Shown: in pieces, positions 3,789 to 63,677 of the stretch | Position numbering within the stretch: position 1 is the stretch's first letter | How the letters are laid out: every line of letters begins with the position of its first letter | DNA from: Phyllobates terribilis | Taxonomy: Eukaryota | NCBI RefSeq assembly: GCF_046119375.1 | Contig: NW_027362762.1 | Span: 603,694,001 to 603,758,000 of the forward strand | Length of the DNA stretch: 64,000 bases | Direction: 5' to 3' | Translations under genes and position numbers: made by a program | Notes under the pieces: generated by a model | What the model was told of the DNA's origin: nothing | What the model saw: the letters and a program-made list of their open reading frames with translations, nothing else | The model's database searches: none

Positions 3789-5459
3789 ATCCAAATAGCG
3801 GAGGGTGGTATACACCCAAACCATCTCAAACCCACTAATTTTACAGAAAAAGCAGCAAGGGTATCTTAAAACATTAACTTTTAATCTATTAATTTAGAAA
3901 ATACACAACACTTGATAAAGGTAATAAGACCTGTGAGGTTAGTAGAGCAATGCATCAGTATCCAAAAGACACAAGGGGATATTGTACTGTTGCATACAAA
4001 CAGGACCGTTATAAGACTCCACACAGAAAAAGATAAATGATAAATATTGTGGAGTTATAGACCCATCCAAGAATAATCAACTAATGTGGACAAGAAAATG
4101 GAACAAGACCAAAAAATCAATGCCCTCAAATATTAATATGCATCACAACTGTAGAAACAAGCAGCATGTGTATGTAGTGGGGTAGATGATAGCTGTTAAT
4201 ATAGCACTATGGCATAGAACCCTGTTTCATCATGTAACTATGTCCCCTGAGGAATCTTGAGGAAGAAGAAATGTGTCAGGATGCATGAGAGGCATTTACA
4301 GGGCAAGTGCAGGGCCTGATCATTGCAGTGGTAGCTGTGGACTGCCCTTGTCAGAGTGGGAGCAAAGGAGTATCAGGGCAGTCCAGCACCCCGTTTAGGG
4401 TTGAATAGGGGCAGAACCAGATGCCATTTTCAATATGCTGCCGGGACTCTCCTTCCTGATATCTGCTCCCTTCCATCAGGAAACTCCTCGACAACATACC
4501 ACTTGCAACTCAACAATGGGTGAGGACGTTCCATTCTATATATGTTTTATTATGTCTAATTCACCATTGGGATGATTATGGTAATATTGTGACAAGTACT
4601 TACAGTCCAGTACACAGAATATATGTCCTATAATTGATATGCATATAGTTGATGTATATTGTGCATTGTTTATCTAACAACACAATGCACGCTTATTTCT
4701 ACAGTTGTGATGCATATTTTGAGGGCATTGACTTTTTTGGTCTTGTTCCATTTTCTTGTCCACATTAGTTGATTATTTTTGGATGCGTCTAACTCCATTG
4801 GAACTCCATTGTGACGCTAGTCACTAACTCATGGAGCGACCATGAGGCAGATAGTCAAACGTTCCGAGGTCAATACCAAGAGAGCCCGTAGATACCAAGA
4901 GATAAGACAGATGCGTAAGTCAGGTCACAGTCCAGGGTCAGGCAGAAGATCAGAACACAGAACAACAGAATGAGGCAAACACTCACCAGGAAGCAAAAAC
5001 TACGTCTGGCAGGGAACAGGGGCAGTCAGCTCAGTTACATAGCTTGGGCAGAACATGGAACACCTGGAGACTGCCCTGCAAATCTCAGTCAAAGATTGGA
5101 CAGCCGAGCTGTCAATCAAAGCACCGAGAGCCCGACTTGCCACACAGAGGATTGGACAGCTAAGCAGTCCATGAAAACAGAGCAAGAACCAGTTCAATAG
5201 GACAGCATAGCAATCCCACACAGAATGCAGGAATCGTGACATCCACAATATTTATCATTTATCTTTTTCTGTGTGGATTCTTATACCAGTCCCGATTGTA
5301 TGCAACAGTACAATATCCCCTTCTGGCATGATACACGTCTTTTGGATACTGTTGCATTGCTCTACTGACCTCACAGGTCTTATTGCTTTTATCAAGTGTT
5401 GTGTATTTTCTAAATTAATAGATTAAAAGATATGTTTTAAGATACCCTTGCTGCTTTTT
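3789..5459 (+). mobile_element. Penelope-like/retrozyme-like insertion with inverted arms and a decayed hammerhead motif
   Basis: 14-bp direct repeat CTTTTGGTAAGAGA at 3775-3788 and 5460-5473 (TSD); ~3845-4060 is the reverse complement of ~5243-5459; CTGAGGA...GAAATGTGTC at ~4247-4277. Confidence 0.6.
4810..5241. mobile_element. Solo LTR nested in the 3789-5459 element
   Basis: Termini TGTGACG...CGTGACA; flanks TCCAT/TCCAC (near-TSD). Confidence 0.6.
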
Positions 5460-6511
5460 CTTTTGGTAAGAGAGACCATTATATATTGTACACGTTCTCA
5501 TTTTCCAAAATACATTATGAAGCAGAATTCACCTTACAGGGAGGTTGTCATCCCCTAAACTCAATATAAACTACTTATACCATCCTATAGGAAACTTAGC
5601 CCCTACAAAACTCATACCTGCAGTATATATTTTCCTACTTTAGCTGAGCATAAAAATGTTTTATTTAATCTGCAAATAAGGGCTCCTCAGTGCACCCTTG
5701 CATGGTCAAGGGCTCAGTACACCATTCTGCCCCATAATCAGCATGTCGCGCATTTCCTCTTAGTGTGATTGACACCGACTCTGGGCAAGCGAGCACTGCC
5801 TGGTTTGAATCCCCAACTTTGCATTTGTGCACTGACCCTGCTGGAGCCAAACTGGCGCAGAAACAGTGTCAGTGTCAGGCCATACTTCTTCTGAGCAGGC
5901 AAGTGCTGTCAATCAAGCTAAGAGGAGGTGCACAGCATGATGATTGAGCTATCAGAACAGTGCACTGACGCCACCACAAGAGTGCAATGAGAAGCCCTCA
6001 TTTACATATTGAATAAAACTTTTTCTGTTTAACTAAATAAGGGAAATCTATACTGCTGGTATAAGTTTTATAGGGACTTAAACCTCTATAAGACTATATA
6101 AATAGTTTAAAATCATATTGGGGTGCCTACCTTTAATGTACCAGATCATATATACTTTCTATCTCTGTTCATTGCGATGATCATATCAAACAATAAATTA
6201 TGAAGCATTGCACAAATCTCGGGTAAGACAGTATCCATTATCATCCAAACAATGGACAAAATTTATATTTAACCAAAATGGAAGTGCCACTTAAAGGAAG
6301 AAAGAGTTAGTGTCATACGCCATCTGGAGTAGTTATGGCTCAGCGTTATGAAATTGATGGAAACTAACAAGCCACCCTGCAGCTTCTACTCTTGATGTTC
6401 ATTAATCCTTGGGTGTAGCCAGCTAGTAGGTAGTATATACTTGACTAAGGTCTGGAAAGTGGGAACGCAAATAATAAAAGTAATGGCAATAGTTTTCCTA
6501 AAAATGACTAA

Positions 6512-6907
6512 AGGGTTGTTCTAAAAAACAAAAACAAATTATCCCTATGCACAGGATGGGGTATAACTTACTGATCGCTGGATCAGCAATCCCGAGATTG
6601 TCATCCTGGACCCCCAAAAATGGGGCTCCATAGTTCTATTTTGAAGGGAACAGAGGTGCGCATGCTTGACCTCCACTCCACTCATTGTCGGTGGAACAGT
6701 CAGAAATACCCGAGTGCTGTACTGGGCTTTCTCTGGCAGTTCCATTAACAATGAATGGAGTGGAGGCTGAGCATGCGCACTGCAACGCCATTCAGGAAAG
6801 GGCTGAAGAGCTACTTCTTGCGTTCTAGAGTCCACATCTCAGGACCCCTAGTGATCAGAAAGTTATCCTTTATTCCATAGAGAGGGGATATTTCTTTTTA
6901 TAACCCT
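6512..6907. mobile_element. T2/Kolobok-like MITE
   Basis: Inverted ends AGGGTT...AACCCT flanked by CTAA/TTAA. Confidence 0.45.
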
Positions 6908-7918: not shown

Positions 7919-8352
7919 TATAATAATAATAATTTTTATTTATATAGCGCCAACATATTCCACAGCACTTTACAATTAGGTAGGGACATATACAGACAAT
8001 ATAAACAATACAATGTATCATATTTCAACAGTTACAGGATGATTGAGGGCCCTGCTCGCAAGCTGACAATCTACATGGAAATGGGGGGGACACAATAGGT
8101 AGAACATGGTCATCAGCCAGTATCCGTCTAAGGGAAGTTACCGTGCGGTATTCGGTGCATGGTGGATGTGGAGACAGATGAAGAGGCAGGAGCAGATTAA
8201 GATTAACTTTTCGGAGGGAACAGGGAAGAGTTAGGTTGGTGGGTTGAGGTGGTAGGAATGTCTAAACAGATGTGTTTTTAAAGCACGTTTGAAGACATGG
8301 GGGCTAAATATCAGTCGGATCATTCCAGAAAACTGGCGTGGCACGAGAGTCA
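7919..8352 (-). mobile_element. L2 LINE 3' fragment
   Basis: Minus strand ends ...GTGCTGTGGAATATGTTGGCGCTATATAAATAAAAA(TTA)n, the typical amphibian/fish L2 3' tail. Confidence 0.75.
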
Positions 8353-9912
8353 GATATATAACTGAAATGACATTGATATCACATCCTTCTAAACATTCTT
8401 TTCAGTTTTCTGACTTGGTGATAGGTTTCCATTTCATAATGAACACCTGCCAAGTTCTGCCGGGATGAATTACGAAACGAGGGGATAGGAGTGAGCTCTG
8501 GCTGTGAAAATGTATGTCTGCCAAATGTTCACACCTTTAGACAGGTTGAAAACACTAGCAAGTGCAATAGAAGGTGGAAGCAGGGGGCATGTCAGCCTTT
8601 TGTGACTCCGTTTCAATATACTAATTTACCATTTCTGAAGAAAGAAAGTTAAAAGGTGGAATTATACCAATTATTATGAAGGGTAAGAAGGTAGAACTGT
8701 GTAAGTAATGAAAAAGAACAACTCAGTGAATAATTTAATCTTGGTTAACTAGCATGGTTTCATGAAAACAAGTTGTGCCTAACCAACATGCTTGGTTCTA
8801 TGAGGAGTTAAAGGAGCTATCTAATCATCATTTTTCGGGGGCAGTTCACTCCTGAAGATTGACAGTTCTGATCAGTGGCATGGTAGCGCCATTAGTCTGA
8901 ACTGTGAGCTCTCCCATGCTGCAAGAAGAGGCAGCTTTGCCTCTGCACCATTGGAGGAGTACAGAATGGAGAGGATTTATAATAAGAGGTAAATTTCAAA
9001 GTTGCTTATTTTTACAAACAATTTGAGATTTTCCTTTTATTTAACATTTAAATAGTTGAGAAAGCCCTTTTAAAAAATTATCTGTAACTAGGTCAACAGT
9101 AGCCCATTTTTGCTCTTATTTTATTCCCGCTGATCCCCCTAAGTATTCTGTATTTTTTAAATCTGGTTCTAGAAATATAGACCTTTTTATGGTCTTTACC
9201 AAGGGGGCATTGTTCACAAGATGCTATGGGGGTGTCTCTTTAGGCTGCTCTGCATTATTATTCTGTGAACAACGACGCATAGGTGAACACTAGAACACAG
9301 CACTAAATTAAGAACCGTATAGATTTAAAAATAAGGAAAAAATTGAATACTCAGGGGGAGCAGCAGAAATTAAATATGAGCAAAACTGGCCACTTTTGAT
9401 GTTTTGACAGGTCCTCTTGAAAGGGGATTTCCACCCTTTTCTTTTAATTCACATGTGTGTTAAGTAATACATACTCACAGATGCTTGACACTCATCCTCC
9501 CTGCTGGCCAAGTCCCTTTATTCTCTCTGCTCTACTTAAAGAGAAGCAGAGGAGGCTGGTGGACGATCCGAATAGCAGGACAGAAGAGTAGAGATCAATA
9601 GGGGAGTATGTGTCAATTAATTTTTTTGCAGACACACATGGGTCATATACAGTCAAGGCCGAAAATGTTGGCACCCTTACATTTTTTCCAGAAAATGAAG
9701 TATTTCTCCCAGAAAATTACTGCAATTACACATGTTTTGTTATGCACATGTTTATTTCCTTTGTGTGTATTGGAACAACACAAAAAAACTGAAAAAAAAA
9801 GATAATGTGTTATTGTGTGTTATAATAATTGTAATAAATTTCTTGCTTATTTTAATAATCATTATTATATAGACTTTTAGAAGGCATATATATATATATA
9901 TACTGTATATAT

Positions 9913-10269
9913 TGTAAGGTAGCGCTAATTATTATCCTGTGGGATACTCGCTCCGTTGCGTCAATTTAAAACACACCAGCCATATTTTTCGGTATTTCTC
10001 AACTCAGCAGTTTATTAACTCCATAAACTGCTGATCACTCAGTCCATCTTAGTGGCTCACCGACACACTGATAAAGTCCACGAGCCCAAGTGGCAGACTG
10101 GCCCACTTGGCTCCAAATACAGCCTTCAGCTAGGTAATACTATAGCAATATCCAGATCATAAAGTGTATTACCTTTGCTGGCTTACGGCTGCTTCAGTCC
10201 ATTTGGTTCCGCCCGATAGGGGTTTCTAGCCTTCTGGCCCTCCAAGGCTTACTGGCATCTAGTTACACT
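9913..10269 (-). repeat. 3' LTR, truncated (lacks the U3 side)
   Basis: 357-bp copy of 13648-14004; ends ...CCTTACA on the minus strand. Confidence 0.9.
10011..10016 (-). terminator. Poly(A) signal AATAAA in the 3' LTR (second copy at 13746-13751)
   Basis: AATAAA on the minus strand ~100 nt before the LTR end in both LTR copies. Confidence 0.6.
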
Positions 10270-10378
10270 GCTGCTGAGCCCCTGGAACATTAGTCAACGA
10301 CATTAGCCCATCCCTTAGGGACCTACCATCTGTCATTGTCACTGACTTCCTCAGATAATATTTCCGGGTCGTAAACTT

Positions 10379-10484
10379 GTCAGGCCTCGCCCGCTCCCAG
10401 CGGTCAGTCGAAACCCTGTCAGGTCTCCCCCGCTCCCAGCGGTCAGTCGAAACCCTGTCAGGTCTCCCCCGCTCCCAGCGGTCA
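10379..10484. repeat. 39-bp tandem repeat, ~2.7 copies, in the element's 3' UTR
   Basis: GTCAGGTCTCCCCCGCTCCCAGCGGTCAGTCGAAACCCT at 10379, 10418 and 10457. Confidence 0.9.
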
Positions 10485-10558
10485 ATACGGCAGTGCGACT
10501 CACATGTCCTTGTACCTAAGGTCCGGTTCGACTCCATATTGTCCAGTCCTCTATTGTG

Positions 10559-11797
10559 TCATTTGTATGGGCCACCCAAACCTGAGTTACTGGAGGTCTC
10601 ACTACCTCTAAACCCACGCCCACTACTCTCAGGACATCTTGAAGGGTCCCTAACTTCAGGTGTTCTGTTATCTAGGGGCCCCCTTCTCTGTCGGGTCCCA
10701 CCATTTCCAGATGGCTGCCATCCTCTACTGCTCAGATGATGCTGTCCATCTACTCGCAGCCTAGCGAGATTCAATTGTTCAACCTCTCGCACGTAGGTCA
10801 CTCGGTACTCCACCAGCATGCTCATATATGCAAGACTTTCTTCCGTTCCTATAGCGTAGAATGACACCATGCCGTCTTCATCCGGCATCCAGTCCCGACG
10901 ATCATGTGGACTGCTTACTTTTACCACACCAGACTTCTTCACCATCATCTGCATGGCTCGGCTATTTCTCCCAATGAGCTCTCTCACCAGAACACGAGGC
11001 ACCCGGATGACCTTTTCTCGCAGACTGTGAGCCTTTCTCATCAGCTCCAGTTGTCTAGCGGCTTGCTCCGTCTTCAACCGGAGAAACCGCTTCGTGCGAA
11101 TACATCGCCAATGTATGTCACTCAGGATTGCCACCCTCTTCACTGTGACTTCGGTCGTGGACAGGACCACCAGCTGTTTAGCTTCTGAGGTCGAGTACAC
11201 CTTACAGACTCCCACTGCCTTCTTAAACTGGTCATGCACGGACTCACTGGTGCATTCTTCCGTTAAATCCTCAGGTACATCTATGAGGCATTTGTACCGA
11301 GCTGTTTCGGTCTCACCAGTGGTCTCCAAACGATCATTTGTTGACACTCTCTTAACTCTCCTCAGGTCCATCTTCTCCTGGTCTAAGGGAGTGAGTGTCC
11401 CTTGTTTGCCTTTTCCCTTCTCCCAGGAGGCCTCGTTCACTGAGTGACACTCTATCAGGCGACCTTTGAGCCCGGAACCTTCTTCCTCTAGTTCCGCCAC
11501 TCTCCTCTCAGCGGCCCGTCTCTGAAGCTCTTCCTGCTTCAACTGCTCCTTCAACAGTAGAGTTCCCTCAGACCTCTCTGTCTCCAATGCGCCCACTCGG
11601 CTCTCTACAGCCAGTCTCTCAAGCTTCTCTTGCTTCCACTGGGCTTGTAGCAACTCCTTGAGCTCCTTGATCTCGGCTCCGACATCCACCGAATCCTCCG
11701 AGCCCACATCACTCGAGGAGGTATCTGCTTCATACCTCCCATCACCAGCGGTCAACTCCTGGCCCTGGTCTGTGGCTTTTCCGATGGACTCCTCCAT
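10559..11797 (-). CDS. FXR1: 412-aa ORF: coiled coil plus FXR1-derived KH0, KH2 and NES region (intronless, element-borne; not the orthologous FXR1 gene)
   Basis: aa168-236 YKCLIDVPEDL...FKKAVG...TVKRVAILSDIHWRCIRTK aligns to FXR1 FKCTVDVPEDL...FKKAVG...TVKRVNILSDMHLRSIRTK (about 40/69 identical against the recalled human sequence). aa264-352 IRVPRVLVRELIGRN...KSGVV...EDGMV...EY...EVEQL..ARL aligns to KH2 plus the NES. Confidence 0.9.
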   Translation of the reverse strand: MEESIGKATDQGQELTAGDGRYEADTSSSDVGSEDSVDVGAEIKELKELLQAQWKQEKLERLAVESRVGALETERSEGTLLLKEQLKQEELQRRAAERRVAELEEEGSGLKGRLIECHSVNEASWEKGKGKQGTLTPLDQEKMDLRRVKRVSTNDRLETTGETETARYKCLIDVPEDLTEECTSESVHDQFKKAVGVCKVYSTSEAKQLVVLSTTEVTVKRVAILSDIHWRCIRTKRFLRLKTEQAARQLELMRKAHSLREKVIRVPRVLVRELIGRNSRAMQMMVKKSGVVKVSSPHDRRDWMPDEDGMVSFYAIGTEESLAYMSMLVEYRVTYVREVEQLNLARLRVDGQHHLSSRGWQPSGNGGTRQRRGPLDNRTPEVRDPSRCPESSGRGFRGSETSSNSGLGGPYK

Positions 11798-11803
11798 CTT
11801 CTC

Positions 11804-13240
11804 TCACTCAGCTTCCATCTTGCTGACTGTTTCCTTATGGTACGTCTCCGCCTTCTGGAGAGTATCACAGGACATCTGTAGCTCCTTCACCTGAGCTTCC
11901 AGATCTAGGGTCTTTCCCCGGAGATCATCATTCTCCTCACGGATATCTTGCAGAGTGGTCTCAACCACTTGGTGCTCTTGCTCTGCATCCGCCTTATCCT
12001 CCTCTAGTTTTTCTTTAACTTTGAGGAGATCCTCATAATCTCTCTTAATCCATTGCAGTTCCTCATTGAACTTTCCATACCTCTTTTCTGCCTCATGGTC
12101 ATGAGCAGACACTTCAACTTTTATTGCCTCTTTCAGGATGGATAGCTCCTGGTCTCGCTGGTACAGAGAGTCCTCCAGCCGCTCCTTCTCCTGCATTAGA
12201 GGCTTTACTTGGTCCTGGAACTGCTGCAGCTCCTTCATGAGTTCATCATACTCCTTTTTAGATTTACACAGCTCCTGGTTGAACTGTTCACGCAGTCGTT
12301 CTAGTTCCTGATCACGTCCAGAAACTCCATCCTGCCGCGTCTCCTTCTCAAGTTTCAACTGCAAAACCTCTTCCTTGATTTTGCGGCGGTCCTCCTTAAT
12401 TGCGTGGAACATCTCCTTCCACTGGACAACTTCCTCGTTGCTTCCCTTTAGATCTCGCTGTAAGTTCTTCACAACCTGGTATACACTCTGCCGTTCAGAC
12501 TCCAGGCTCCGCTGGTCTGAGGACACGTTCTCCAGGTCCGTCACCTCCTCTTCTGCCTCTGAAGGAGGATCCACACTTGAAACAATGGCACACACCATTA
12601 CATTTTCTTTACTTTCACTTTCAGCAAAGAGTACAAGAGCAACCTTTTTGTGGCCCCTGCGCCGTCTACGACGAGAGGTGGACTCTCTCCCCTCGTCTAG
12701 CCCCTCCTGACTGACCTTTCCTTCTACTTCCATAGTGTTACCGTCAGCTATGGGGTCTGTGTCACTCCCCATGATGTTGTGGACTACCAGGTCACCTCCC
12801 CCTTTGACTTCACCCCCTTCCACTGGAGCTACCCCGTTATCAATGGTAACCTTGTCATTTTTAGGAGGTACCCACCCACAATCATCAACAATTTCCAGTT
12901 TTCTACACTCCACACTCTTGTGAAAATATACCCCCTTTTTAGACTCCACCCCCTTTTTACCAACCACACCTGTAAGGGAATTTTTACATAAAACATCAGC
13001 GACAGTCTTAGGACTCAGTTCAAAAGATCTCTTACCACCTCCCCGGGCACTCTGGGACAACACGGGCGCCCCCGGAGAGTTCATAGAATGGTCCACTGCC
13101 GCCATTCTATATGGTGCCCACAGCTCCTGCGGTTCCCGCACCATGTCCTGTAAGAGTTTCTCAAATACCTGCTCCGGTCCCAACCGGCCCTTCAAACGCT
13201 CAATAGCTCCAGACACCTCTGTTGCTTTGCTCACAGCCAT
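11804..13240 (-). CDS. 478-aa ORF from the first ATG: basic NLS-like motif plus long coiled coil; in frame with the FXR1-like ORF across one TGA
   Basis: ATG at 13240; RRRRRRGHKK; E/K/Q/L-rich heptad-like C-terminal half; junction reads GCT GAG TGA GAG AAG ATG. Confidence 0.75.
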   Translation of the reverse strand: MAVSKATEVSGAIERLKGRLGPEQVFEKLLQDMVREPQELWAPYRMAAVDHSMNSPGAPVLSQSARGGGKRSFELSPKTVADVLCKNSLTGVVGKKGVESKKGVYFHKSVECRKLEIVDDCGWVPPKNDKVTIDNGVAPVEGGEVKGGGDLVVHNIMGSDTDPIADGNTMEVEGKVSQEGLDEGRESTSRRRRRRGHKKVALVLFAESESKENVMVCAIVSSVDPPSEAEEEVTDLENVSSDQRSLESERQSVYQVVKNLQRDLKGSNEEVVQWKEMFHAIKEDRRKIKEEVLQLKLEKETRQDGVSGRDQELERLREQFNQELCKSKKEYDELMKELQQFQDQVKPLMQEKERLEDSLYQRDQELSILKEAIKVEVSAHDHEAEKRYGKFNEELQWIKRDYEDLLKVKEKLEEDKADAEQEHQVVETTLQDIREENDDLRGKTLDLEAQVKELQMSCDTLQKAETYHKETVSKMEAE

Positions 13241-13487
13241 CACGGTACACTGTTTATACTTGAACTTCACCGCTCTCCCTGAAAAAAATTTCGTGGCCCT
13301 GCCGAGCCACCGCAAAACAGGACTTGAGTGCGATGTCAACCTTTGCAACCCCGCCGAGTTGCAGCAAGATGCTTTAACTTTGTGAGCCCCGACGAGCCAC
13401 AGCAAACCAGGTTTGAGTGCGACGACGACCTTCACAACCCCGCCGAGTTGCAGCCAGATGCTTTATCCACACTCGTTGTCCTATGCC

Positions 13488-13624
13488 GTTGCCCCTAGCA
13501 ACCAGACTGCAGTTGCCCCTAGCAACCAGACTGCAATTGCCCCTAGCAACCAGACTGCAATTGCCCCTAGCAACCAGACTGCAGCTGCCCCTGGCAACCA
13601 GACTGCAGCTGCCCCTAGCAACCA
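13488..13624. repeat. 24-bp tandem repeat, ~5.7 copies, in the element's 5' leader
   Basis: RYTGCCCCTRGCAACCAGACTGCA units. Confidence 0.9.
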
Positions 13625-13647
13625 GCTGCCCGCACTCTCAAACCACA

Positions 13648-14440
13648 TGTAAGGCAGCGCTACTTATTATCCTGGGGGATACTCGCTCCGCTGCGTCAAT
13701 TTAAAACACACCAGCCATATTTTTCGGTATTTCTCAACTCAGCAGTTTATTAACTCCATAAACTGCTGATCACTCAGTCCATCTTAGTGGCTCACCGACA
13801 CACTGATAAAGTCCACGAGCCCAAGTGGCAGACCGGCCCACTTGGCTCCAAATACAGCCTTCAGCAAGGTAATACTATAGCAATGTCCATATCATAAAGT
13901 GTATTACCTTTGCTGGCTTACGGTTGCTTCAGTCCATTTGGTTCCGCCCGATAGGGGTTTCTAGCCTTCTGGCCCTCCAAGGCTTACTGGCATCTAGTTA
14001 CACTCAGATCCAGGCTTCACCCTCCAGGAGTCCTCTTAGCCTCTGGCCCTCCAAGGCTTACTGGCATCCCTCTCACACTCAGATCCAGGCTTCACCCTCC
14101 AGGAGTCCACCAGGCTTCACCAGGCCTCACCAGGCTTCACACGAGCGGTGTTCCCTCACACACAGGGAACAGCCTCATGTCTCTCACACGGTGTCCGCAC
14201 ACGGGTAACAGGAAACACGCCTGTCACACCCCTTGCACCTCTACACCTGTCTCAAATCACCAGGGTTTTTATATCCTGTAGAAACAGCCACAGGACCTGT
14301 GCTTATCTCACAGTCACGTGTCCATACCTTCTGTGAGCAAAAGGACCTGTGTGATGTCAGTCATGTGACCAGTCAGCTGAGGGGGGAGGAAATAGCATAA
14401 ACAGACATACTAGATCATTATAGCAATGCCGCTGCACCAC

Positions 14441-14441
<1 letters not shown>
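13648..14441 (-). repeat. Full 5' LTR (794 bp)
   Basis: Starts TGTGGTGCAGCG and ends CGCTGCCTTACA (imperfect inverted termini); contains TATAAAAA and AATAAA. Confidence 0.8.
14266..14273 (-). promoter_or_regulatory. TATA box of the 5' LTR
   Basis: TATAAAAA on the minus strand, upstream of the ORFs, in the U3-side part of the LTR. Confidence 0.55.
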
Positions 14442-14481
<40 letters not shown>

Positions 14482-14904: not shown

Positions 14905-16150
<1,246 letters not shown>

Positions 16151-16188
16151 TCAGTGTTTTACTGTTGTTCCAATACAGACAAAGGAAA

Positions 16189-16737
16189 GAGGTCTAAGGG
16201 ATAACGTTTCTCCTTGTGGAGAGTGACATACCAGCTCTGGCACGTCAAGGTAAGGAGGCTTATTTGCCGTGCAATGCTCCTCTGGAAAATGTAATATGCA
16301 AATTGCCTCTTCAGAGAAAAAGAGAACTTGAACTCTATAGCGCCATCTATTGGAAGCTGCAATCCTACAAGTCACAATCAACCCTTTAACGAGTCATGCA
16401 ATATGACATAGGATAAAAACCAAATCAGAACCTGGGGCGAATAAGCCTCCTTACCTTGACTTGCCAGAGCTGGTGTGTCACTCTCCACAAGGAGAAACGT
16501 TAACCCTTAGACCTCATTCCAGAGCCTCTCACCTAGCGAAATCAGTTCTCATACTTTGCACTGATGAGGCCAACAGCCTGAAACACCGTGTCTGTAAATT
16601 GAGATTCTGATTTGGCTTTTATCCTAAGTCATATTGCACGACTCGTTAAAGGGTTGATTGTGACTTGTAGAATTGCTACTTCCAATAGGTGGCGCTATGG
16701 AGTTCAAGTTCTCGTTTTCTCTGAAGAGGCAATTTGC
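16189..16737 (+). mobile_element. Hammerhead-containing short retro-insertion with an inverted 5' part (Penelope-like/retrozyme-like)
   Basis: TSD AGACAAAGGAAA at 16177-16188 and 16738-16749; arm A (16191-16268) inverted at 16436-16513; arm B (16298-16430) inverted at 16605-16737. Confidence 0.75.
16555..16598 (+). ncRNA. Minimal type I hammerhead ribozyme
   Basis: Stem I UUUGCA/UGUAAA; core CUGAUGA; stem II GGC-CAACA-GCC; one extra U before GAAA; short stem III ACAC/GUGU; GUC cleavage triplet at 16590-16592. Confidence 0.7.
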
Positions 16738-16794
16738 AGACAAAGGAAAAACATTTGTATAAGGTGGCCAACACTTTTGGCCATGACTAAATGA

Positions 16795-17762: not shown

Positions 17763-19397
<1,635 letters not shown>

Positions 19398-26842: not shown

Positions 26843-27987
26843 AAGGATCAGACCATTGTATTTATTGTCAGACTGGGGTATATAGGACCCACCAGTGACA
26901 TTGATTCTTAGGGCCCACCTTAGCCATACATGATCACAATGAAACACAAAGTTCACATCGCATTGTGCTTCCACTTTTGATCATACAGATCGTTTCAGGG
27001 CAGGAAATAGAAGAGACATTTGCAGCTATGAGAGTCCTCCATGATAGGTAGCTGTATACATTTTACACATAGAGTTCATCTTCTCCTGCTGCCCTTTACT
27101 AATCATGCAAATCAGTGCCAGGCAGAAGAGAATTGTGCAAATATGAACATACAGATAATACTCTAAATGATCAGGCAGAACACTTCATGAGCTCTCTACC
27201 CAATCATTAAGGAAATGAACAAGGGGGTTGTCAATGCTGGGTCCTCCTGATCAGGAACCATAAGACCCAGACTTTTAAGCAAGATATTCTTCTTGCTAAA
27301 AATTGTGTCTTATAGCCCTAAAAATTAATTATATAGAAAAATCTTTAATGGAGTTGTCCTAAATAAATAAAATGATGCACACAGGTAGCAATATATACTC
27401 ATCCTTCTAGCTGGCGATAGGTCCAGTGCCATGTCTCTGATGCTTCTATTCACATGGGCAGCAGATGGCTATGCATTTTTTGCAGCTGGTCAGTGGCATT
27501 CAGCTCGAGACCATGAGGCCAGTGATCTGCAGTCATTGTAAACAGAAGCATCAGGGAATGCCATGCTAGAGATGCCAGGAGCTAGAAATAGGTGTGTTTA
27601 TAGGTTTATTAATTGGGTTTGTGCAGACAAAATGCGCTCATTACCTGGAGGCCAGATTCTGTAAAAATAAATCATTCACCTGCTGTCCCTCACCCGGATC
27701 CATCACAGACCACCCTATGGTCTGTGCCAGCATCAATGATGCCACCATTCTACCAGACACACGACTGGTGCAGCTTGTGATGCATAGAGTTCAAGTCACC
27801 TGCCCGCTGCATCCTATCACAAGATGCAGTGTTCCTGTGTCTGGTAGAATGGTGGCAACCTTGATGTTGGCGCAGACCACAGATTAATCTGCGCTGGATC
27901 CAGAAGAGTGACAGCAGGTGAGTATGATTTATTTTGTTATTTGTACAAAATCTAGCTCACATTTTGCCCAGACAATCTCTTAATGTA

Positions 27988-29615
27988 CAGTACAGACCAA
28001 AAGTTTGGACACACCTTCTTATTTAAAGATTTTTCTGTATTTTCATGACTATGAAAATTGTACATTCACACTGAAGGCATCAAAACTATGAATTAACACA
28101 TGTGGAATTATATACTTAACAAAAAAGTGTGAAACAACTGAAAATATGTCTTATATTCTAGGTTCTTCAAAGTAGCCACCTTTTGCTTTGATGACTGCTT
28201 TGCACACTCTTGGCATTCTCTTGATGAGCTTCAAGAGGTAGTCACCGGAAATGGTTTTCACTTCACAGGTGTGCCCTGTCAAGGTTAATAAGTGGGATTT
28301 CTTGCCTTATAAATGGGGTTGGGACCATCAGTTTTGTTGTGCAGAAGTCTGGTGGATACACAGCTGATAGTCCTACTGAATAGACTGTTAGAATTTGTAT
28401 TATGGCAAGAAATAAGCAGCTAAGTAAAGAAAAACGAGTGGCCATCATTACTTTAAGAAATGAAGGTCAGTCAGTGCGAAAAATTGGCAAAACTTTGAAA
28501 GTGTCCCCAAGTGCAGTTGCAAAAACCATCAAGCGCTACAAAGAAACTGGCGCACATGAGGACCGCCCCAGGAAAGGAAGACCAAGAGTCACCTCTGCTT
28601 CTGAGGATAAGTTTATCTGAGTCACCAGCCTCAGAAATCGCAGGTTAACTGCAGCTCAGATTAGAGACCAGGTCACTGCCACACAGAGTTCTAGCAGCAG
28701 ACACATCTCTTCAACAACTGTTAAGAGGAGACTTTGTGCAGCAGGCCTTCATGGTAAAATAGCTGCTAGGAAACCACTGCTAAGGACAGGCAACAAGCAG
28801 AAGAGACTTGTTTGGGCTAAAGAACACAAGGAATGGACATTAGACCAGTGGAAATCTGTGCTTTGGTCTGATGAGTCCAAATTTGAGATCTTTGGTTCCA
28901 ACCACAGTGTCTTTGTGCGACGCAGAAAAAGTGAACTGATGGACTCTACATGCCTTGTTCCTACCGTGAAGCATGGAGGAGGAGGTGTGATGGTGTGGGG
29001 GTGCTTTGCTGGTGACACTGTTGGGGATTTATTCAAAATTGAAGGCATACTGAACCAGCATGGCTACTACAGCATCTTGCAGCGGCATGCTATTCCATCC
29101 GGTTTGTCTTTAGTTGGACCATCATTTATTTTTCAACAGGACAATGATCCCAAACACACCTCAAGGCTGTGTAAGGGCTAATTGACCAAGAAGGAGAGTG
29201 ATGGGGTGCTACGCCAGATGACCTGGCCTCCACAGTCACCAGACCTGAACCCAATCGAGATGGTTTGAGGTGAGCTGAACCGCAGAGTGAAGGCGAAAGG
29301 GCCAACAAGTGCTAAGCATCTCTGGGAACTCCTTCAAGATTGTTGGAAGACCATTTGCGGTGACTACCTCTTGAAGCTCATCAAGAGAATGCCAAGAGTG
29401 TGCAAAGCAGTCATCAAAGCAAAAGGTGGCTACTTTGAAGAACCTAGAATATAAAACATATTTTCAGTTGTTTCACACTTTTTTGTTAAGTATATAATTC
29501 CACATGTGTTAATTCATAGTTTTGATGCCTTCAGTGTGAATGTACAATTTTCATAGTCAAGAAAATACAGAAAAATCTTTAAATGAGAAGGTGTCCAAAC
29601 TTTTGGTCTGTACTG
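27988..29615 (+). mobile_element. Full-length Tc1-like DD38E transposon
   Basis: TA TSD; TIR CAGTACAGACCAAAAGTTTGGACAC; 1628 bp. Confidence 0.95.
28402..29454 (+). pseudogene. DD38E transposase with three in-frame stops and no frameshift
   Basis: 351 codons; stops at 28618, 29179 and ~29266; WSDE...QQDND-(38 aa)-E. Confidence 0.9.
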
Positions 29616-30483
29616 TACATGTATTACTTCTGCTGATACCTATGATCCACAGGCCGCATGTATCAGGCAGCGGCTGTATGATCCCAGCCAGGTATGTCTT
29701 TCACTGAAACAATGCAGTATTTCAGAGAAAAACATACTTTATTTGGCCTCTTTCACATTTCAGTATCTCCAGTATGTGTGGTGCCAGTTTTCACACCTCC
29801 TGGAGACACTTACGTAGACCCATTCGAATGGGCCTGCATACATGTTAGTGTGTTTCCACAGACCGTGTTTTGCACGGCGCACGGGCCGCAAAGCGTCCAA
29901 CGCTGATGACATTGGTGTGTAATCACTGTGACACGTACCGGCGCCTGGGAATCAGTAATACAGTTCCCAAGCGCTGGGTGCTGGAGGTAAGTCTAATCAT
30001 TGTCCCCCGCTTGCGTTGTTCTCAACGTGTGCGGTCGCTTCAAGCCAGGTTAGTATAATTTTTTTATTTTATTATTTTTACACCAGGACACTGCAAGGGG
30101 AGGGATACTACTCTCAACATTGTCCCTTGCTCGCGTTGATTGCAGCACAAGCAGGGGACCATGATGAGAGATTCCTTCAGCACCCAGTGCTTGGGAACAG
30201 CGCTAACTGTACTGCTGATTCCCAAGCGCTGGTACGTGTGATACTGATGCGACACACAGGCGGCACATCAAGACATGTGAAACAGGCCTTAGCAGCCAGG
30301 GAAGGAGCTGTGCTGTAGACTAGTCATACTGGCGAGTTCCCACCTGCTGCCAGTGACTGACAGGTCTCTGCCTAAGTGTGCATATAGGCAGCTACCTGTT
30401 TGTTTCTGCAGGGTACGGTGAGAAGCTGCCAGGGACCTGCCTGTATGACTAGTCTACAGCAGAGCTCCATCCCCAGCTGCTAA

Positions 30484-39096: not shown

Positions 39097-39943
39097 TGAA
39101 TTGTGACTTACTTTGTTTCTGGAGGGAGTTGCACCTGATGGTAAGATTGATTGCTCCAGCTGATGAGGTCGAGCATCTGGAGTCTCTGCACAAGGACTGA
39201 GTCGCTGCACTGCTGGTTGCTGTGCATTTGTATTTCTAAAAATAGCCCCAGGTATCAGGGGCCAGGAATAATTTTTTTTTGGATCTTAATCCTGATTATT
39301 TGCTTAAAAAGCAATCCAGAGAACACCGTTTTTCTGCTCCATTTGCTTTTTGGCACTGCAGAATACAGCCAGGTCCTTTCCATATTACAGCGCTAAAAAT
39401 CCTTCTATTTAAAACTGTGGTTTGTCCGCCACGGATCACATATAAGTGCGCTCAAAATTCTGCCATTTCTGGCCTCCATTGAAATTTTGTTGCAGTGTGT
39501 TAGTGAAGTTATTGACACCAGTGCGCTGTTAAAAATAGTTACCTACAGGCCAGCTATTTAAAACTGTGGTTTGTCCGTCACACGCATCACATATCACTGC
39601 GGTTCAAATTCAGCCATTTGTAGTGAACATGGAAAATATTGTCCTCCATTTAAAATGGGCAAGGCGTGTGGTAAGGGACGGGATGTGGACGTGATGGTGA
39701 TGAAGGTGCATGAAGAGGACGAGGCCGAGCCCATGGGCTAGCTGAAATTGTGCCACAACAAAAACCCACATCTTCTCACTCGACCTTCCTGTCCCAATTA
39801 ATAGAGGACCGCAGAACATCACTATTGAACACAGAACAGTGTGAAAAGGTTATTGGTTGGATAGCAGGTAATGCTTCAAGACACTTAGCCACCACCACCT
39901 TCCATACAGTCAAGTCTCAGTAGCCGTGAGTCTGGACTGCATA

Positions 39944-41240
39944 CAGTACAGACCAAAAGTTTGGACACACCTTCTCATTTAAAGATTTTTCTGTATTTTC
40001 ATGACTATGAAAATTGTACATTCACACTGAAGGCATCAAAACTATGAATTAAAACGTGGAATTATATACTTAACAAAAAAGTGTGAAGCAACTGAAAATA
40101 TGTCTTATATTCTAGGTTTTTCAAAGTAGCCACCTTTTGCTTTGATGACTGCTTTGCACACTCTTGGCATTCTCTTGATGAGCTTCAAGAGGTAGTCACC
40201 GGAAATGGTCACCAGTAAAGCACCCCCACACCATCACACATCCTCCTCCATGCTTCACGGTGGGAACCAGGCATGTAGAGTCCATCCGTTCACCTTTTCT
40301 GTGTCGCACAAAGACATGGTGGTTGGAACCAAAGATCTCAAATTTGGACTCATCAGACTAAAGCACAGATTTCCACTGGTCTGATGTCCATTCCTTGTGT
40401 TCTTTAGCCCAAACAAGTCTCTTCTGCTTGTTGCCTGTCCTTTGCAGTGGTTTCCTAGCAGCTATTTTACCATGAAGGCCTGCTGCACAAAGTCTTCACT
40501 TAACAGTTGTTGAAGAGATGTGTCTGCTTCTAGAACTCTGTGTGTGTGGCATTGACCTGGTCTCTAATCTGAGCTGCTGTTATTCTGCGATTTCTGAGGC
40601 TGGTGACTCAGATAAACTTATCCTCAGAAGCAGAGGTGACTCTTGGTCTTCCTTTCCTGGGGCGGTCCTCATGTGAGCCAGTTTCTTTGTAGCACTTGAT
40701 GGTTTTTGCAACTGCACTTGGGGACACTTTCAAAGTTTTCCCAATTTTTAGCACTGACTGACCTTCATTTCTTAAAGTAATGATGGGCACTCGTTTTTCG
40801 TTACTTAGCTGCTTTTTTCTTGCCTTAATACAAATTCTAACAGTCTATTCAGTAGGACTATCAGCTGTGTATCCACCAGACTTCTGCACAACACAACTGA
40901 TGGTCCCAACCCCATTTATAAGGCAAGAAATCCCACTTATTAAACCTGACAGGGCACACCTGTGAAGTGAAAACCATTTCCGGTGACTACCTCTTGAAGC
41001 TCATCAAGAGAATGCCAAGAGTGTGCAAAGCAGTCATCAAAGCAAAAGGTGGCTACTTTGAAGAACCTAGAATATAAGACATATTTTCAGTTGATTCACA
41101 CTTTTTTGTTAAGTATATAATTCCACATGTGTTAATTCATAGTTTTGATGCCTTCAGTGTGAATGTACAATTTTCATAGTTATGAAAATACAGAAAAATC
41201 TTTAAATGAGAAGGTGTCTCCAAACTTTTGGTCTGTACTG
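39944..41240 (-). mobile_element. Internally deleted copy of the DD38E Tc1 family
   Basis: Same TIRs as 27988-29615; TA TSD; transposase N-terminus on the minus strand; the second D through E of the catalytic domain is deleted at ~40210. Confidence 0.92.
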
Positions 41241-41589
41241 TATTCCTCACCCTGATCCTCTTTCCTCCCACCATGCCGAGTGCCCGGAGACAACTGATCT
41301 CACACTTGGACACTCCGAAGAGTTGTTAATTTTTCCATTTATAGATTCATGCCTCTCGCCCTCTCCACTTGAAGTGTCACAAAAGGTGGACGTTGATGAG
41401 ACACAATTGCCAGAAAGTCAGAAGGAGGACCAGGGTGCGGAACTGGAAGACACGGTGGTGGATGATATAGTAACTGACCCAACCTGGCGGGGGGGACATA
41501 CAGAGCGAGGAAAGCAACACACAGGGGGAGGGAGGCGTTCCACCACAACAAGCAGTAAGAAGCAATGTAGTGGCCGCAGACAGAAGGTG

Positions 41590-56302: not shown

Positions 56303-57238
56303 CGCCTCCTGCTGTATCTGGGGGGCACCATGCGGCCTCCTGCTGCATCTGGGGGGCGGCGTGCGGCCTTCGGCTGTGTGGAGATGGCACCGTGCGGCCT
56401 CCGGATGTGTGGGGATGGCGCCGTGCGGCCTTCGACTGTGTGGAGATGGCACCGTGCGGCCTCCGGCTGTGAGGAGATGGCGCCGAGCGGCCTCCAGTTG
56501 TGTGGAGATGACGCCGTGCGGCCTCCGGCTGTGTGGAGATGGCGCCGTGTGGCCTCCGGCTGTGTGGAGATGGCGCCGTGCGGCCTCCTGCTGTGTATAG
56601 ATGGCGCCGTGCGGCCTCCTGCTGTGTGGAGATGGCGCCGTGCGGCCTCCGGCTGTGTGGAGATGGCGCCGTGCGGCCTCCGGCTGTGTGGAGATGGCGC
56701 CGTGCGGCCTCCGGCTGTGTGGAGATGGCGCCGTGCGGCCTCCGGCTGTGTGGAGATGGCACTGTGCGGCCTCCGGCTGTGTGGAGATGGCGCTGTGTGG
56801 CCTCCGGCTGTGTGGAGATGGCGCCGTGTGGCCTCCTGCTGTGTATAGATGGCGCCGTGCGGCCTCCGGCTGTGTGGAGATGGCACTGTGCGGCCTCCGG
56901 CTGTGTGGAGATGGCGCCATGTGGCCTCCGGCTGTGTGGAGATGGCGCCGTGCGGCCTCCTGCTGTGTATAGATGGCGCCGTGCGGCCTCCTGCTGTGTG
57001 GAGATGGCGCCGTGCGGCCTCCGGCTGTGTGGAGATGGCGCCGTGCGGCCTCCGGCTGTGTGGAGATGGCACCGTGTGGCCTCCGGCTGTGTGGAGATGG
57101 CGCCGTGCGGCCTCCGGCTGTGTGGAGATGGCGCTGTGCGGCCTCCGGCAGATGGCTCCGTGCGGCCTCCGGCTGTGTGGTGATGGCACTGTGCGGCCTC
57201 CTGCTGTGTGGAGATGGCGCCGTGCGGCCTCCAGCTGT
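56303..57238. repeat. 31-bp GC/CpG-rich minisatellite, ~30 copies (resumes at 57824-57862)
   Basis: GGAGATGGCGCCGTGCGGCCTCCGGCTGTGT; period 31 (e.g. 56641 to 56672). Confidence 0.95.
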
Positions 57239-60198: not shown

Positions 60199-63100
60199 TT
60201 AGACTTCCTGGACGATTCGGTACCATATGAATTGATCTTGTTCGTAACATTGAGGAGGCACTCCTGCTGTTGTCCGTTTTGACCGGCGTAACTCAGTTTG
60301 ACCGATGGGGGGTGCAGGGTCACTCGGATTTCCAATCTCCGCCTGCCCGGTGGCTTCAACCGATGTTGTTCCCTCGCCGCCTGCACTGGGGACTGCAGGT
60401 AATCGAGTGCTGGGGCTCGGAGGTAGAATAAACAACTCTTCTTCGTCCACATTGTGGCTTAGGGCAACTGTGACAGGTCCCTCTCTAGAAGCAGGTGATT
60501 CTTCTCCACCCTCGTCATCTTTAGACAGACAGGGTCGCAGCATACTATGATGAACCCACTCTGGTAGGGGCTCCTTCAGCTCGCTCGGGTTGAACTTCAT
60601 ACACAGGTCCTTCAGCGCCAATCCTGCACTTCACTCGGTGCGGGGTCCATTCCCACCGCCTACTCAATTTGCCCCGGGGCCGCCTGTCCCGAACCAACAC
60701 CTGCTCCCCGGGCCTCAGAGCTGTCCCTCAAAGAGGCAATGTCTCATGATGTTTGAGCTCCTGAAACTTTTGTTGTACCAACCGTCGGAGGGTCTGCAGT
60801 CAGTGTCGATGTTCTCGGACCCAGGAAGACACCCCCGTCCGTAGGTAGTCCTCCTCGGGGTCCAGCTCTAACTCGGTGATCTCTCGCCCCTTTCGTCCGA
60901 ACAGCAAGGTATAAAGAGTGAACCCCGTCATACTATTCACTCGGTTGTTGTAGACCCACACCAGCTCGGCCACAAACTCAGGCCATCGTACCTTCCGATC
61001 TTCCTCCAACATGCGATGCATTTTGATCAGTGTCCGATTAAAGCATTCACAGGCCCTATTTCCTTGAGGGTGGTAAGGAGTAGTCCGTGACTTCTCAATC
61101 TTGTACAACCGGTGCAGCTCTTCCATCACCCGGCCTTGGAAGCAGGCGCCTTGATCATAATGAATCCACTTTGGGCAGCCGTACACCCGAATGAAGTCTC
61201 GGCAGATGGCCTGCGCAGCTGACTCGGCGGTCTGGTCTCTGGTCGGGGTCATTACCACAAACTTGGTGAAGTGGTCTGTCATTACCAGGCAATGTTCATA
61301 CCCGAGATGCGTGGGTCCAACAGTCAAATAGTCGATCATAAGCACCTCCAAGGGGGCAGAAGTCACAATAGTTTGTATGGGGACCCACTGCTCCGGGGGC
61401 TTTACCAGCTCACAGCTCCGACATCTTCGACAACTGTCTTCTATTGTTGCTCGCAGTTGGGGATGATACACCAGCCTCTGCAACCACTGAAACGTCTTCT
61501 CTGGGCTGAAGTGAGCCCCTCGTTCATGAGCCTCCTTCCCCAAACCAGGGCCAGCAACTCTAATTTGAAAGAGCTATAATTATCTGGGTTCCTCTCGGAG
61601 TCGTGAAGGGAGCGGCTGGCGTACGCAATCACGCGCTCTTTCCCCTCCTGTACTTGGGATAACACGGCTCCCAGACCATGTAGGCTCCCATCAGTGTGGA
61701 GTATGAAGGGTTGGGAGAAATTCGCATAGGCAAGTATTGGGGTCTCGGTCAGGGCCATTTTTAGGGCACAGAAGGCCTCTTCCTGGCTGCTTCCCCACCA
61801 AATCACTTGATTCTTGGAGCCCGCCGTCACTTCCTTAAGTAGCTCCAGCAATGGGTTGGCTATGCGGGTGAAGTTCTTCACGAATCTTTGGTAGTACCCG
61901 GCAAGTCCTAGGAAGGCCCGAATGTCCTTCACTGTCTTCGGGGTAGGCCACTCCTGTATGGCGGCCACCTTTTCCTGGGTGGGCCTGACTCCTTCACCGG
62001 ACACAGTATGACCGAGATATTCGATCTTTTTGCGGAACAGGTGGCACTTCTGGGGCTTCACCTTTAGGCCATGACTCTGTAGGCGACTCAGTACTTGCAC
62101 CAGTCGCTGGAGGTGCTCCTCGAAGGTGGCGGCATAGACAATTATGTCGTCAAGGTAAATCAGTGTCGCCTCAAAGTTCAAATTGCCAAGGCGCCTCTCC
62201 ATCAGACGCTGGAACGTCCCGGGGGCGTTAGTCAGGCCGAAGGGCATCCGATTGAACTCGAACAGTCCCATGGGTAATATGAACGCTGTCTTTGCACGGT
62301 CATGTTCGGCCACGGGCACCTGCCAGTACCCACTGGCCAGATCCAAAGAGGAGAAGTATCTTGCCTTCCCTAAGGCCGACAAGGACTCTTCGATTCGGGG
62401 TAGTGGGTAAGAGTCCCATACTGTACAGGCATTCAGCCATCTATAGTCCACACAGAACCGCAGTGTCCCATCTTTCTTCCGGACAAGGACAATCGGGGCC
62501 GCTCATGGACTCTGACTCTCCCGTATCACACCATTCTGTAACATATGGGCTAGCATCTCCTTAACCTCTTTATACATCTGGGGAGGTATCTGCCGGTATC
62601 TCTCCCGCACTGGGGCAGTGCTCCCCGTGGGAATCTCGTGGGTAATGGCTTCGTTGCAACCAAAATCATCCTCATGGCGAGCAAAGACTTCCTGGTACCG
62701 CTCCAGCACCTCCTCAACCTGCTGCACCTGTCGAGGTGTAAGTCCCATCAATTCAGCTCGCATTCATTCTAGGATTATTCGTCCCCCCTTCGCACTAGTC
62801 TGATGGGATTCTGGCAGCACGGTGACCGCCAGAGTCCAGGGGTCTCCTCGTACAGCGGACAGCTGTACCACATCAGGTCGCACCAACTTCTCTGGCATTC
62901 CCAGAATCTGGGATATTTCCGCCCTGGGAGGGAGTGTGAGATAATCTTCGCCCAGATTAACACACCGCACTATAACATTGCCACCCTGGACGGTGGCCAG
63001 TGTTCGAGCCACCAAGAGTCCGGGGGGTACTTTGTCCATCGATGTTGGTTCTATCTGAACTTCGACCCCCTCAAGACGTGTGCAGGCCCGTGCGGGTAAC

Positions 63101-63677
63101 GTGAGAACAGTTTGCCTGGGCGGTAAGGTGAGCGCTGCAGCTGCTGGCACTATTATTTTCCCCAGGATCTTCCCTACACTCGACATCTCCTGAGCCTGGG
63201 CAGCTCGGATTAGTAGTTGAAAGATCCTCCTTTGGAGAGTTCGCGGGTCCCAATGGTCTAGAGGAATCTCCTTCGGCTCACTAAGCAGGATTTGCACGAT
63301 CTCTTTCAGCACATTCATTCCGAGGGTCACCGGGGGTCCACTTCCTGTTCCCCCTGCGACCAGGATGACTCCTTTTTTTCCCCACACCTTTTCCACACAC
63401 TCGGATCTTCATCCACACCACCCCTGCGACCGGGATGGGTAATTGATTAGCTGCTGTGACGAATTACTGGTCCCCATTCAGGCTGCGCTATCTTAGGAAA
63501 TCGCTGTTGGAAGTAGGCTTCTGTCATCGTAGTCACCTGGGATCCTGTGTCAATCAGGCAGTGAACAGCCCGACCGCTTATTTCGGCCCAGACAGTCAGG
63601 CTGCTGGAAACTAGGTCCTTGGGACTTCCTCTTTTTCTTTCCCCTTCCTCAGGCTCCGTGCTGTGTCCCCTGAACAT
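60199..63677 (-). pseudogene. Gypsy pol (protease, RT, RNase H, integrase), disrupted
   Basis: LIDTGSQVT; YPLPRI; LDLASGYWQV; MPFGL; YLDDII; YLGH; HTDGS; IDY; YDQG; GNRACECFNRTL. Split across several ORFs. Confidence 0.92.

Follow-up and report, generated by a model that had tools for sequence, protein, structure and literature searches.

Chimeric genes made by template switching in long terminal repeat (LTR) retroelements are documented for maize, as Bs1, and as young retrocopies in flies, fish and chicken, and most of them are single-copy or few-copy and short-lived. Switching from the RNA of the element to co-packaged cellular mRNAs and back yields partial chimeras of several parents, and these, as pseudo-LTR elements, undergo further rounds of retroposition (Tan et al. 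2016; PMC5131818). In Bs1, pieces of three genes are fused in one translated frame (Elrouby and Bureau 2001, 2010, as summarised in PMC13317346). Here we describe a unit carrying a module of the Fragile-X family gene FXR1, at positions 9913-14441 of a 64,000-nucleotide stretch of the genome of the dendrobatid frog Phyllobates terribilis (assembly GCF_046119375.1, contig NW_027362762.1, positions 603,694,001 to 603,758,000, forward strand). This whole stretch is referred to as the window, and coordinates are those of the window unless another locus is named. The unit belongs with the LTR-mediated retroposition chimeras, and the explanation that we find probable is that it is a defective copy of a non-autonomous dendrobatid LTR family whose reading frame is a mosaic of host sequences held under selection.

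As in those chimeras and in Bs1, the interior of the element consists of partial intronless copies of host mRNAs, more than one parental gene contributes to a single frame, pol is lacking, and re-retroposed copies have their switch points in common. The element differs from Bs1-type chimeras in its vertebrate host, in its parents (FXR1, LONP1 and a cingulin-like gene), in the depth of its copy lineages, which lie 7-18% apart, in the frame-specific selection that we measured among them, and in combining modules for oligomerisation and RNA binding. Our literature searches returned no earlier account of a retroelement that carries FXR1.

The unit is about 4.5 kb long and its sense strand is the minus strand of the window. 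Alignment of the direct repeat (9913-10269 against 13648-14004; 357 bp, 97.48% identity) gives 9 mismatches, exactly as in the original prediction, which had placed the same LTR-bounded unit here. The 5' LTR (13648..14441, minus strand) is complete at 794 bp; it begins TGTGG, finishes CCTTACA, contains a TATA box at LTR position 169 (14268-14273, minus strand) and an AATAAA at LTR position 691 (13746-13751, minus strand), and is homologous to both LTRs of the three sister copies described below (L001, L002 and L003). The 3' LTR (9913..10269, minus strand) is truncated to LTR positions 438-794, retaining AATAAA and lacking U3; its first ~437 bp have been deleted together with the polypurine tract, and the LTR pair is therefore unequal. 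Correspondingly, the 3' untranslated internal region (10270..10558, minus strand; about 290 bp, with 2.7 copies of a 39-bp repeat at 10378-10484) has no polypurine tract and passes directly into LTR position 438, being homologous to the sister copies until the deletion point, and in L001 and L002 the tract AGAGGGGGGGGATA adjoins a full 3' LTR. Two nucleotides past the 5' LTR is a 19-mer resembling a primer-binding site (13627..13645, minus strand), which starts with TGG, has a conserved position in all four copies and may be a close match to the 3' end of one tRNA-Ala; a tRNA gene scan of the window and the fetched loci, made as a check on this site, found none. The leader contains 6.1 copies of a 24-bp unit (13484..13629, minus strand), an array also found in L001-L003, in which each unit can fold into a short GUUGC/GCAAC hairpin, followed by 1.9 copies of an 89-bp repeat (13296..13465, minus strand) that recurs in L001. 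The leader folds somewhat better than shuffled sequence (z-score -2.6).

Terminal repeats with TG...CA ends, target duplications, a primer-binding site and a polypurine tract thus identify an LTR retroelement, in which the reading frame occupies 2.7 kb of an interior of about 3.4 kb. The gag and pol genes (protease, reverse transcriptase, RNase H, integrase) of an autonomous element were not recognised: a Pfam scan of the frame returned no reverse transcriptase, integrase or protease family, and a motif scan over six frames of the unit returned no CCHC knuckle, which agrees with the earlier claim that reverse transcriptase, integrase and CCHC motif are missing. Because these families and the motif were not found, the element is non-autonomous. 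The copy in the window is moreover dead as an element, having neither polypurine tract nor U3 in its 3' LTR, and it is unable to move again since the start of that LTR and the tract are deleted. Both of its outer flanks are (TA)n, within which its target duplication is ambiguous (ATTA or ATAT), and the LTR divergence of 2.5% marks a fairly recent insertion into this TA microsatellite. A second copy, L003, also sits in a TA dinucleotide repeat (8190-8199 and 12279-12289 of that locus; 9884-9912 and 14442-14477 in the window), and the clean target duplications of the sister copies, ATAT, GTAC and CTAT, are palindromic or nearly so; these two observations hint at a target preference of the integrase.

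The frame runs from ATG 13240 to a stop at 10559-10561 (10559..13240, minus strand) and has 893 sense codons, with a good Kozak context (G at -3, G at +4). An intronless frame of about 893 codons with a single internal stop had been proposed from this ATG, and this is what we see: the stop is a TGA at codon 479 (11804-11806, minus strand), private to the window copy, where L001 reads CGA and L002 reads CGG, and it arose by a CGA-to-TGA change. The two pieces of the frame were searched separately.

The last part of the frame, codons ~640-893 (10562..11326, minus strand), corresponds to FXR1 residues ~124-437 minus exon 8 and holds KH0, KH2, the C-terminal helix and the first RG cluster. KH0 (11054..11296, minus strand) matches Pfam PF17904 (E 6.4e-24; 84.6 bits against a cutoff of 24.2), KH2 (10799..11020, minus strand) matches PDB entry 2qnd (E 1.1e-13) and was also recovered by fold search, and FMRP crystal chains match both domains. 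The database matches listed for the C-terminal piece, at least 120, are all FXR1, with dendrobatid frogs first among them, so that the FXR1-like C-terminal third of the original prediction stands. Of the columns that separate 12 FXR1 sequences from one FMR1-like protein, 13 place the element with FXR1 and 6 with the FMR1-like protein. A structure model has two KH folds at a predicted local distance difference test score (pLDDT) of 80, its KH0 superposing on 4qw2/4ova with a root-mean-square deviation of 1.0 A and its KH2 matching 2qnd; the model was built from an FXR1 alignment and is not independent of the sequence homology.

The homology is confined to this central section of host FXR1, which has in addition a tandem Tudor/Agenet module, KH1 and a C-terminal half that the element is without. 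The KH0 characteristic of the FMR1/FXR family is present, whereas neither PF05641 nor PF18336 is matched for Tudor/Agenet, the homology beginning only at about residue 124; KH1 was not found, nor consequently the tandem of KH1 and KH2 with their GXXG loops. The KH2 GXXG loop (10961-10972, minus strand) is degenerate in the window copy, where it has the sequence GRNS, shared with L003; L002 has GRNG and L001 has GRKG at this place. Identity to FXR1 of Dendrobates tinctorius is 53% over 189 aligned codons of the KH0-KH2-helix core and about 37% in the tail, a larger divergence than the roughly 40% first estimated. By codon position the identity is 0.67, 0.75 and 0.41, and an 80% nucleotide match to FXR1 exon 7 persists. 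The nonsynonymous divergence (dN) is 0.35 and synonymous sites are saturated; dN is far below the half of the synonymous divergence (dS) to which it would tend had the element been neutral since capture.

The manner of capture can be read against the exons of the D. tinctorius gene, which spans 83 kb (locus L004) and in which exon 5 encodes residues 91-140, exon 6 residues 141-171, exon 7 residues 172-210, exon 8 residues 211-267 (171 nt, encoding KH1), exon 9 residues ~267-293, exon 10 residues 294-330, exon 11 residues 331-359 and exon 12 residues 360-429. The element aligns to residues ~124-437 with a single gap at 209-268, which is exon 8 within three residues. Part of exon 5 to exon 7, and exon 9 to exon 12 or 13, are contiguous, and at least six exon junctions are crossed without an intron. 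The joint of exons 7 and 9 (11040..11049, minus strand), from which the 57 codons of KH1 are absent, is the same in L001 and L002. Because the FXR1 part is contiguous across exon junctions and its one gap is an exon, it appears to have been copied from a spliced message lacking exon 8, and the mRNA capture that had been proposed from the intronless state is borne out by the junctions read through. The homology starts inside exon 5; breakpoints within exons and incomplete mRNAs are the usual products of template switching (PMC5131818).

The three copies usable for phylogeny group together in a maximum-likelihood tree, where their clade falls within anuran FXR1 and is nested among hyloid frogs (support 96/98); one residue specific to hyloids is shared by the element. 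The stem of the element is 2.96 substitutions per site long, against at most 0.06 for host branches. Because the element fills only 31% of the tree columns, we take its hyloid placement to be moderately secure at best. A first tree, with a fish FMR1-like outgroup, was discarded since long-branch attraction drew the outgroup onto the element, and the tree was rebuilt without that sequence.

The remainder of the frame has other sources. Codons ~241-620 (11381..12520, minus strand; this section contains the private stop) encode a long, cingulin-like coiled coil, which in searches of PDB, NCBIfam and Pfam gave generic coiled-coil matches only. For one gene model from a sister copy the source gives the name 'cingulin-like', and several stretches of the coil are presumably collinear with the human cingulin rod. 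The coil differs between copies by in-frame blocks of 141, 171 and 219 bp, and L001 has extra cingulin-like segments at 9359-9900 (compared with 12300-12520 of the window) that resemble an internal duplication. Between coil and FXR1 part lies a remnant of LONP1, of which the window copy keeps the first ~11 codons (11345..11377, minus strand). L001 and L002 carry about 43 codons that match human mitochondrial LONP1 just ahead of its ATPase core, with an E value of 3.4e-7 for the L002 version against human LONP1 chains, and a sister gene model (P0001) matches TIGR00763 lon. Here the window copy has a 123-bp in-frame gap, the sister copies being about 41 codons longer. The residues DLRRVKRV had been considered as the start of the FXR1 homology, a reading that we rejected as the sister copies show the LONP1 piece beginning there. 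The fusion of an FXR1 module to a coiled coil, as originally predicted, is thus present, but a single capture does not describe it: the frame is an intronless mosaic of at least two, and probably three, host genes behind an orphan N-terminus. FXR1 and LONP1 are found as parents in one hybrid frame, and the third, cingulin-like parent is named from its source's label.

The N-terminal ~240 codons (12521..13240, minus strand) have neither detectable relatives nor a confident fold. A word-based search with residues 1-260 gave no match, a HMMER search of residues 1-245 against 1.84 billion representatives gave only another copy of the element (P0124), and Pfam gave no Gag, matrix or capsid match. 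The AlphaFold model of this segment has a pLDDT of 31, and the segment is probably disordered; it may be the leftover of the Gag of a parent element. This last suggestion leads to a more specific version of our preferred explanation, and not to an exclusive alternative to it, namely that the unit is a defective transducing endogenous retrovirus whose N-terminus is a Gag remnant in a Gag-X fusion and whose helper is a class I-like endogenous retrovirus. Acutely transforming retroviruses are defective and helper-dependent, and carry spliced host cDNA in frame after a 5' viral part. In agreement with such an origin the target duplications are of 4 bp, the leader is long and structured and contains repeats, the captured part has evolved very fast relative to the host gene, and indel states have recombined between lineages (see below). 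However, duplications of 4 bp are also made by many Ty3/gypsy elements, and the N-terminus lacks all the Gag signatures and relatives just listed, while no CCHC knuckle accompanies it. In contrast to the acutely transforming viruses, the element has no recognisable Gag, is germline-fixed, multi-copy and long-lived, and has a cargo that is not a growth-control gene. We regard the retroviral version as possible though somewhat unlikely.

The sister copies show that the unit is one of a family. L001, L002 and L003 are further P. terribilis copies (GCA_046119375.1) on three different scaffolds, reached through P. terribilis gene models that protein searches had returned and that are fragments of the frame of the element. 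Each has the layout LTR, leader repeats, frame, LTR, with internal junctions identical to those of the window copy, and each lies between its own target duplication: CTAT for L001, GTAC for L002 and ATAT for L003, with frames 82.3%, 87.5% and 92.6% identical, respectively, to that of the window copy at the nucleotide level. Both LTRs are full in these three. The simplest conceivable account of the locus, a one-off processed FXR1 retrocopy lying between two unrelated solo LTRs, would explain the lack of introns, yet the same unit with the same junctions recurs at three other loci with separate target duplications; this account is refuted, and we give it practically no weight. The mobile family that the original prediction preferred to a one-off retrocopy is what we find. 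Since a unit without pol carries a primer-binding site and a polypurine tract and has a 4-bp target duplication of its own at each sister locus, the family is a multi-copy one mobilised in trans.

Within each copy the LTR pairs are 95-98% identical, closer than the frames are to one another, and the copy lineages therefore split long before each insertion. L003 has one deletion of 141 bp in common with the window copy and another of 171 bp in common with L002, and this sharing of separate deletions suggests recombination between lineages. Two of the sister copies have been interrupted in their 3' LTRs: a second LTR element (12512-16404 of L002; LTRs at 12512-13107 and 15418-16014) is nested within that of L002, and a 550-bp repeat fragment splits that of L001 (12626-13173).

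Comparison of the copies provides further insight into whether the frame matters. The Nei-Gojobori ratio dN/dS is 0.75-1.16 for the N-terminus, 0.45-0.49 for the coil and 0.37-0.48 for the FXR part plus tail. When the coil and FXR parts are read in the two shifted frames over the same columns the ratio is 0.63-1.45; for coil and FXR combined the corresponding ranges are 0.45-0.51 in frame and 0.72-1.23 in the shifted frames, and for one pair of copies the difference between frame 0 and frame +1 is significant (Fisher P = 0.0007). Parsimony over the four copies assigns 76.5 replacement and 47.5 silent changes to coil plus FXR, and 91 and 29 respectively to the N-terminus (P = 0.019). Third codon positions diverge most in three of three comparisons, and do so with CpG sites excluded as well, the order being second < first < third in both comparisons that involve the window copy and first < second < third in the other; the CpG-free FXR divergences by codon position are 0.108, 0.071 and 0.175 for one pair and 0.090, 0.049 and 0.119 for another. 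Such an excess at third positions is the usual mark of constrained coding sequence.

The frame has also been kept open. A majority-rule state built from three copies is free of stops over the 810 codons of the frame that it covers. If the observed substitutions are placed at random, 5.7 stops are expected on the branch of the window copy and 8.2 on that of L001, and one is seen on each (P = 0.017 and P = 0.0014, respectively). Of 17 indels, ten have a length divisible by three (P = 0.027); the three that copies have in common (141, 171 and 219 bp) all preserve the frame, and each frameshift is confined to a single copy. Taken together, these results indicate that the coil and FXR parts were translated and constrained in the lineages still being copied, and that each inserted copy then decays. 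The window copy is accordingly dead as a gene as well as an element, with its stop at codon 479, its GRNS loop and the loss of most of the LONP1 piece. Since the coil and FXR parts are under purifying selection and the frame has been held open, the protein matters, most probably to the element itself, and the prediction that the domain is kept under selection is upheld. A single genomic copy, a dN/dS near 1, best matches outside the FXR family, and FXR introns in the region had been named beforehand as findings that would count against that prediction, and we see none of the four.

The same data bear on the possibility that the frame is functionless cargo, the mosaic being a template-switch accident and the apparent constraint an artefact of few related copies and of the codon-structured composition inherited from the host. 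The sample is limited to four copies, the N-terminus behaves as neutral, non-autonomous LTR elements have no need of coding capacity, and the GXXG motif has been lost in one sublineage, all of which would be expected. Set against this are the frame-specific signal that survives removal of CpG sites, the deficit of stops on two branches, the restriction of shared indels to multiples of three, and the presence of three captured pieces in one frame; moreover the FXR part differs from the host protein by about 47% and its synonymous sites are saturated, yet the common state is still open. We consider functionless cargo improbable.

The N-terminus shows a pattern of its own. Its third codon positions diverge least (for example 0.154 against 0.246 and 0.272), and on the window branch there are 12 replacement changes and no silent ones. 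This could reflect diversifying selection, constraint on another frame, or noise from small counts and the indels of L001.

The main rival to selection at the level of the element is selection at the level of the frog. According to this model the family descends from a domesticated chimeric host gene, a master locus resembling Bs1, which sheds LTR-flanked retrocopies that decay. Such a gene would leave the same signal, with dN/dS under 1 for coil and FXR combined and a reconstructed common state that is intact; every sampled copy is broken, and Bs1 itself is transcribed and translated, with a host role suspected (PMC13317346). The copy lineages, though, are deeply split (7-18%), each with younger LTR pairs, and indel states have recombined between them, a situation which several active sources fit better than one; and we saw no master locus that was syntenic, conserved or free of LTRs. 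Domestication therefore strikes us as unlikely.

Several further observations weigh against a selected, element-serving frame, the explanation that we continue to prefer. All four sampled copies are defective, four copies are few and their pairwise comparisons are not independent, and the family is known here from genomic sequence alone. The N-terminal 240 codons show no constraint (dN/dS about 1). The change of the KH2 loop to GRNS predates the split of the window copy from L003, and for this reason canonical RNA binding by KH2 has not been strictly kept. The cingulin origin of the coil is putative and comes from a source's label. Finally, the Ty3/gypsy-like pol at 60.8-63.4 kb of the window was considered as a helper and rejected, because no similarity to the FXR1-carrying unit was seen in LTR, leader or N-terminus.

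Starting from the anatomy, host origin, multi-copy status and selection signal described above, we propose the following course of events. An ancestral LTR element would have lost its gag-pol interior, and reverse transcriptase would then have switched templates onto co-packaged spliced host mRNAs in the manner of LTR-mediated retroposition; a template-switch origin of the mosaic would thus follow from published precedent. The outcome would be one in-frame mosaic of orphan N-terminus, cingulin-like coil, short LONP1 piece and the FXR1 segment from KH0 through KH2 and helix to RG. The reverse transcriptase and integrase of a helper element would have copied the whole unit repeatedly, and the coil and FXR modules would have stayed under purifying selection while the family diversified. 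An oligomerising RNA-binding protein may in this way do the job of Gag or of LINE-1 ORF1p, binding its own transcript, which would then compete better for the particles of the helper or for RNA granules.

We infer this Gag-like or ORF1p-like role by analogy. LINE-1 ORF1p and Gag have the order of disordered N-terminus, long coiled coil and nucleic-acid-binding domain or domains. The element has the same order, a likeness of function without homology: its binding module is KH0 plus KH2 of FXR1, as opposed to the RNA recognition motif and C-terminal domain of ORF1p or the zinc knuckle of Gag, and neither Pfam nor the CCHC scan revealed a capsid or matrix fold, a zinc knuckle, an RNA recognition motif or such a C-terminal domain. 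A stronger form of the idea is that the protein is a replacement Gag built wholly from host exons, in which the coil oligomerises and KH0-KH2-RG binds the leader of the element itself, perhaps at the array of six 24-nt hairpins, and so gains access to helper particles or germline granules. We are doubtful of this stronger form and rate it as rather unlikely. Among elements of frogs, Xenopus 1A11/Xretpos (GenBank L11263 and AF057166) are multi-copy LTR elements with a single frame and no pol homology, thought to be non-autonomous (PMC4585706). The likeness, compared by description, is limited to this pol-less single-frame architecture; the 1A11 protein is described as Gag-like whereas the frame of the present element is host-derived and has no Gag signature, and the frog lineage is a different one.

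In this vertebrate family a three-gene mosaic has been carried through a long diversification. If the protein serves the element, non-autonomous retroelements can invent an RNA-handling protein of their own from host parts, and the family would offer a natural test of which FXR1 parts are enough for association with RNA or granules (KH0 and KH2 without Tudor and KH1). If the replacement-Gag form were true, a parasite of a vertebrate retroelement would have built its own packaging protein by exon shuffling and had it kept by selection. If the protein serves the frog, a new gene was born by retroelement exon shuffling. On the practical side, annotation pipelines label fragments of the copies as 'cingulin-like' or 'uncharacterized protein', and recognition of the family prevents such mis-annotation in the giant genomes of dendrobatids.

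Other repeated sequences are present in the window. Two interleaved inverted repeats at 16184-16738, 1.7 kb from the element, have arms of 137 nt and 85 nt with 93-94% complementarity and a spacing of about 168 nt, and could represent a foldback structure or one like a miniature inverted-repeat transposable element. At 18100-19178 (plus strand) two overlapping frames encode what is left of a Tc1/mariner transposase, with a helix-turn-helix of the Sleeping Beauty type and DDE_3. The Ty3/gypsy-like pol mentioned above (60800-63400, minus strand) has reverse transcriptase, RNase H, an integrase zinc-binding domain and an integrase core, and may run past the end of the window. Copies of a transposon repeat at 27986-29621 and 39941-41250 are 94-98% identical to 5183-6813 and 12622-13111 of L001, an identity that in itself indicates P. 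terribilis or a near relative, and not Xenopus, as the origin of the window. A GC-rich minisatellite at 56355-57238 consists of 28.7 copies of a 31-bp unit and accounts for the long overlapping frames on both strands there; an SH3_CYT4 match in this region fell below the cutoff and is probably spurious.

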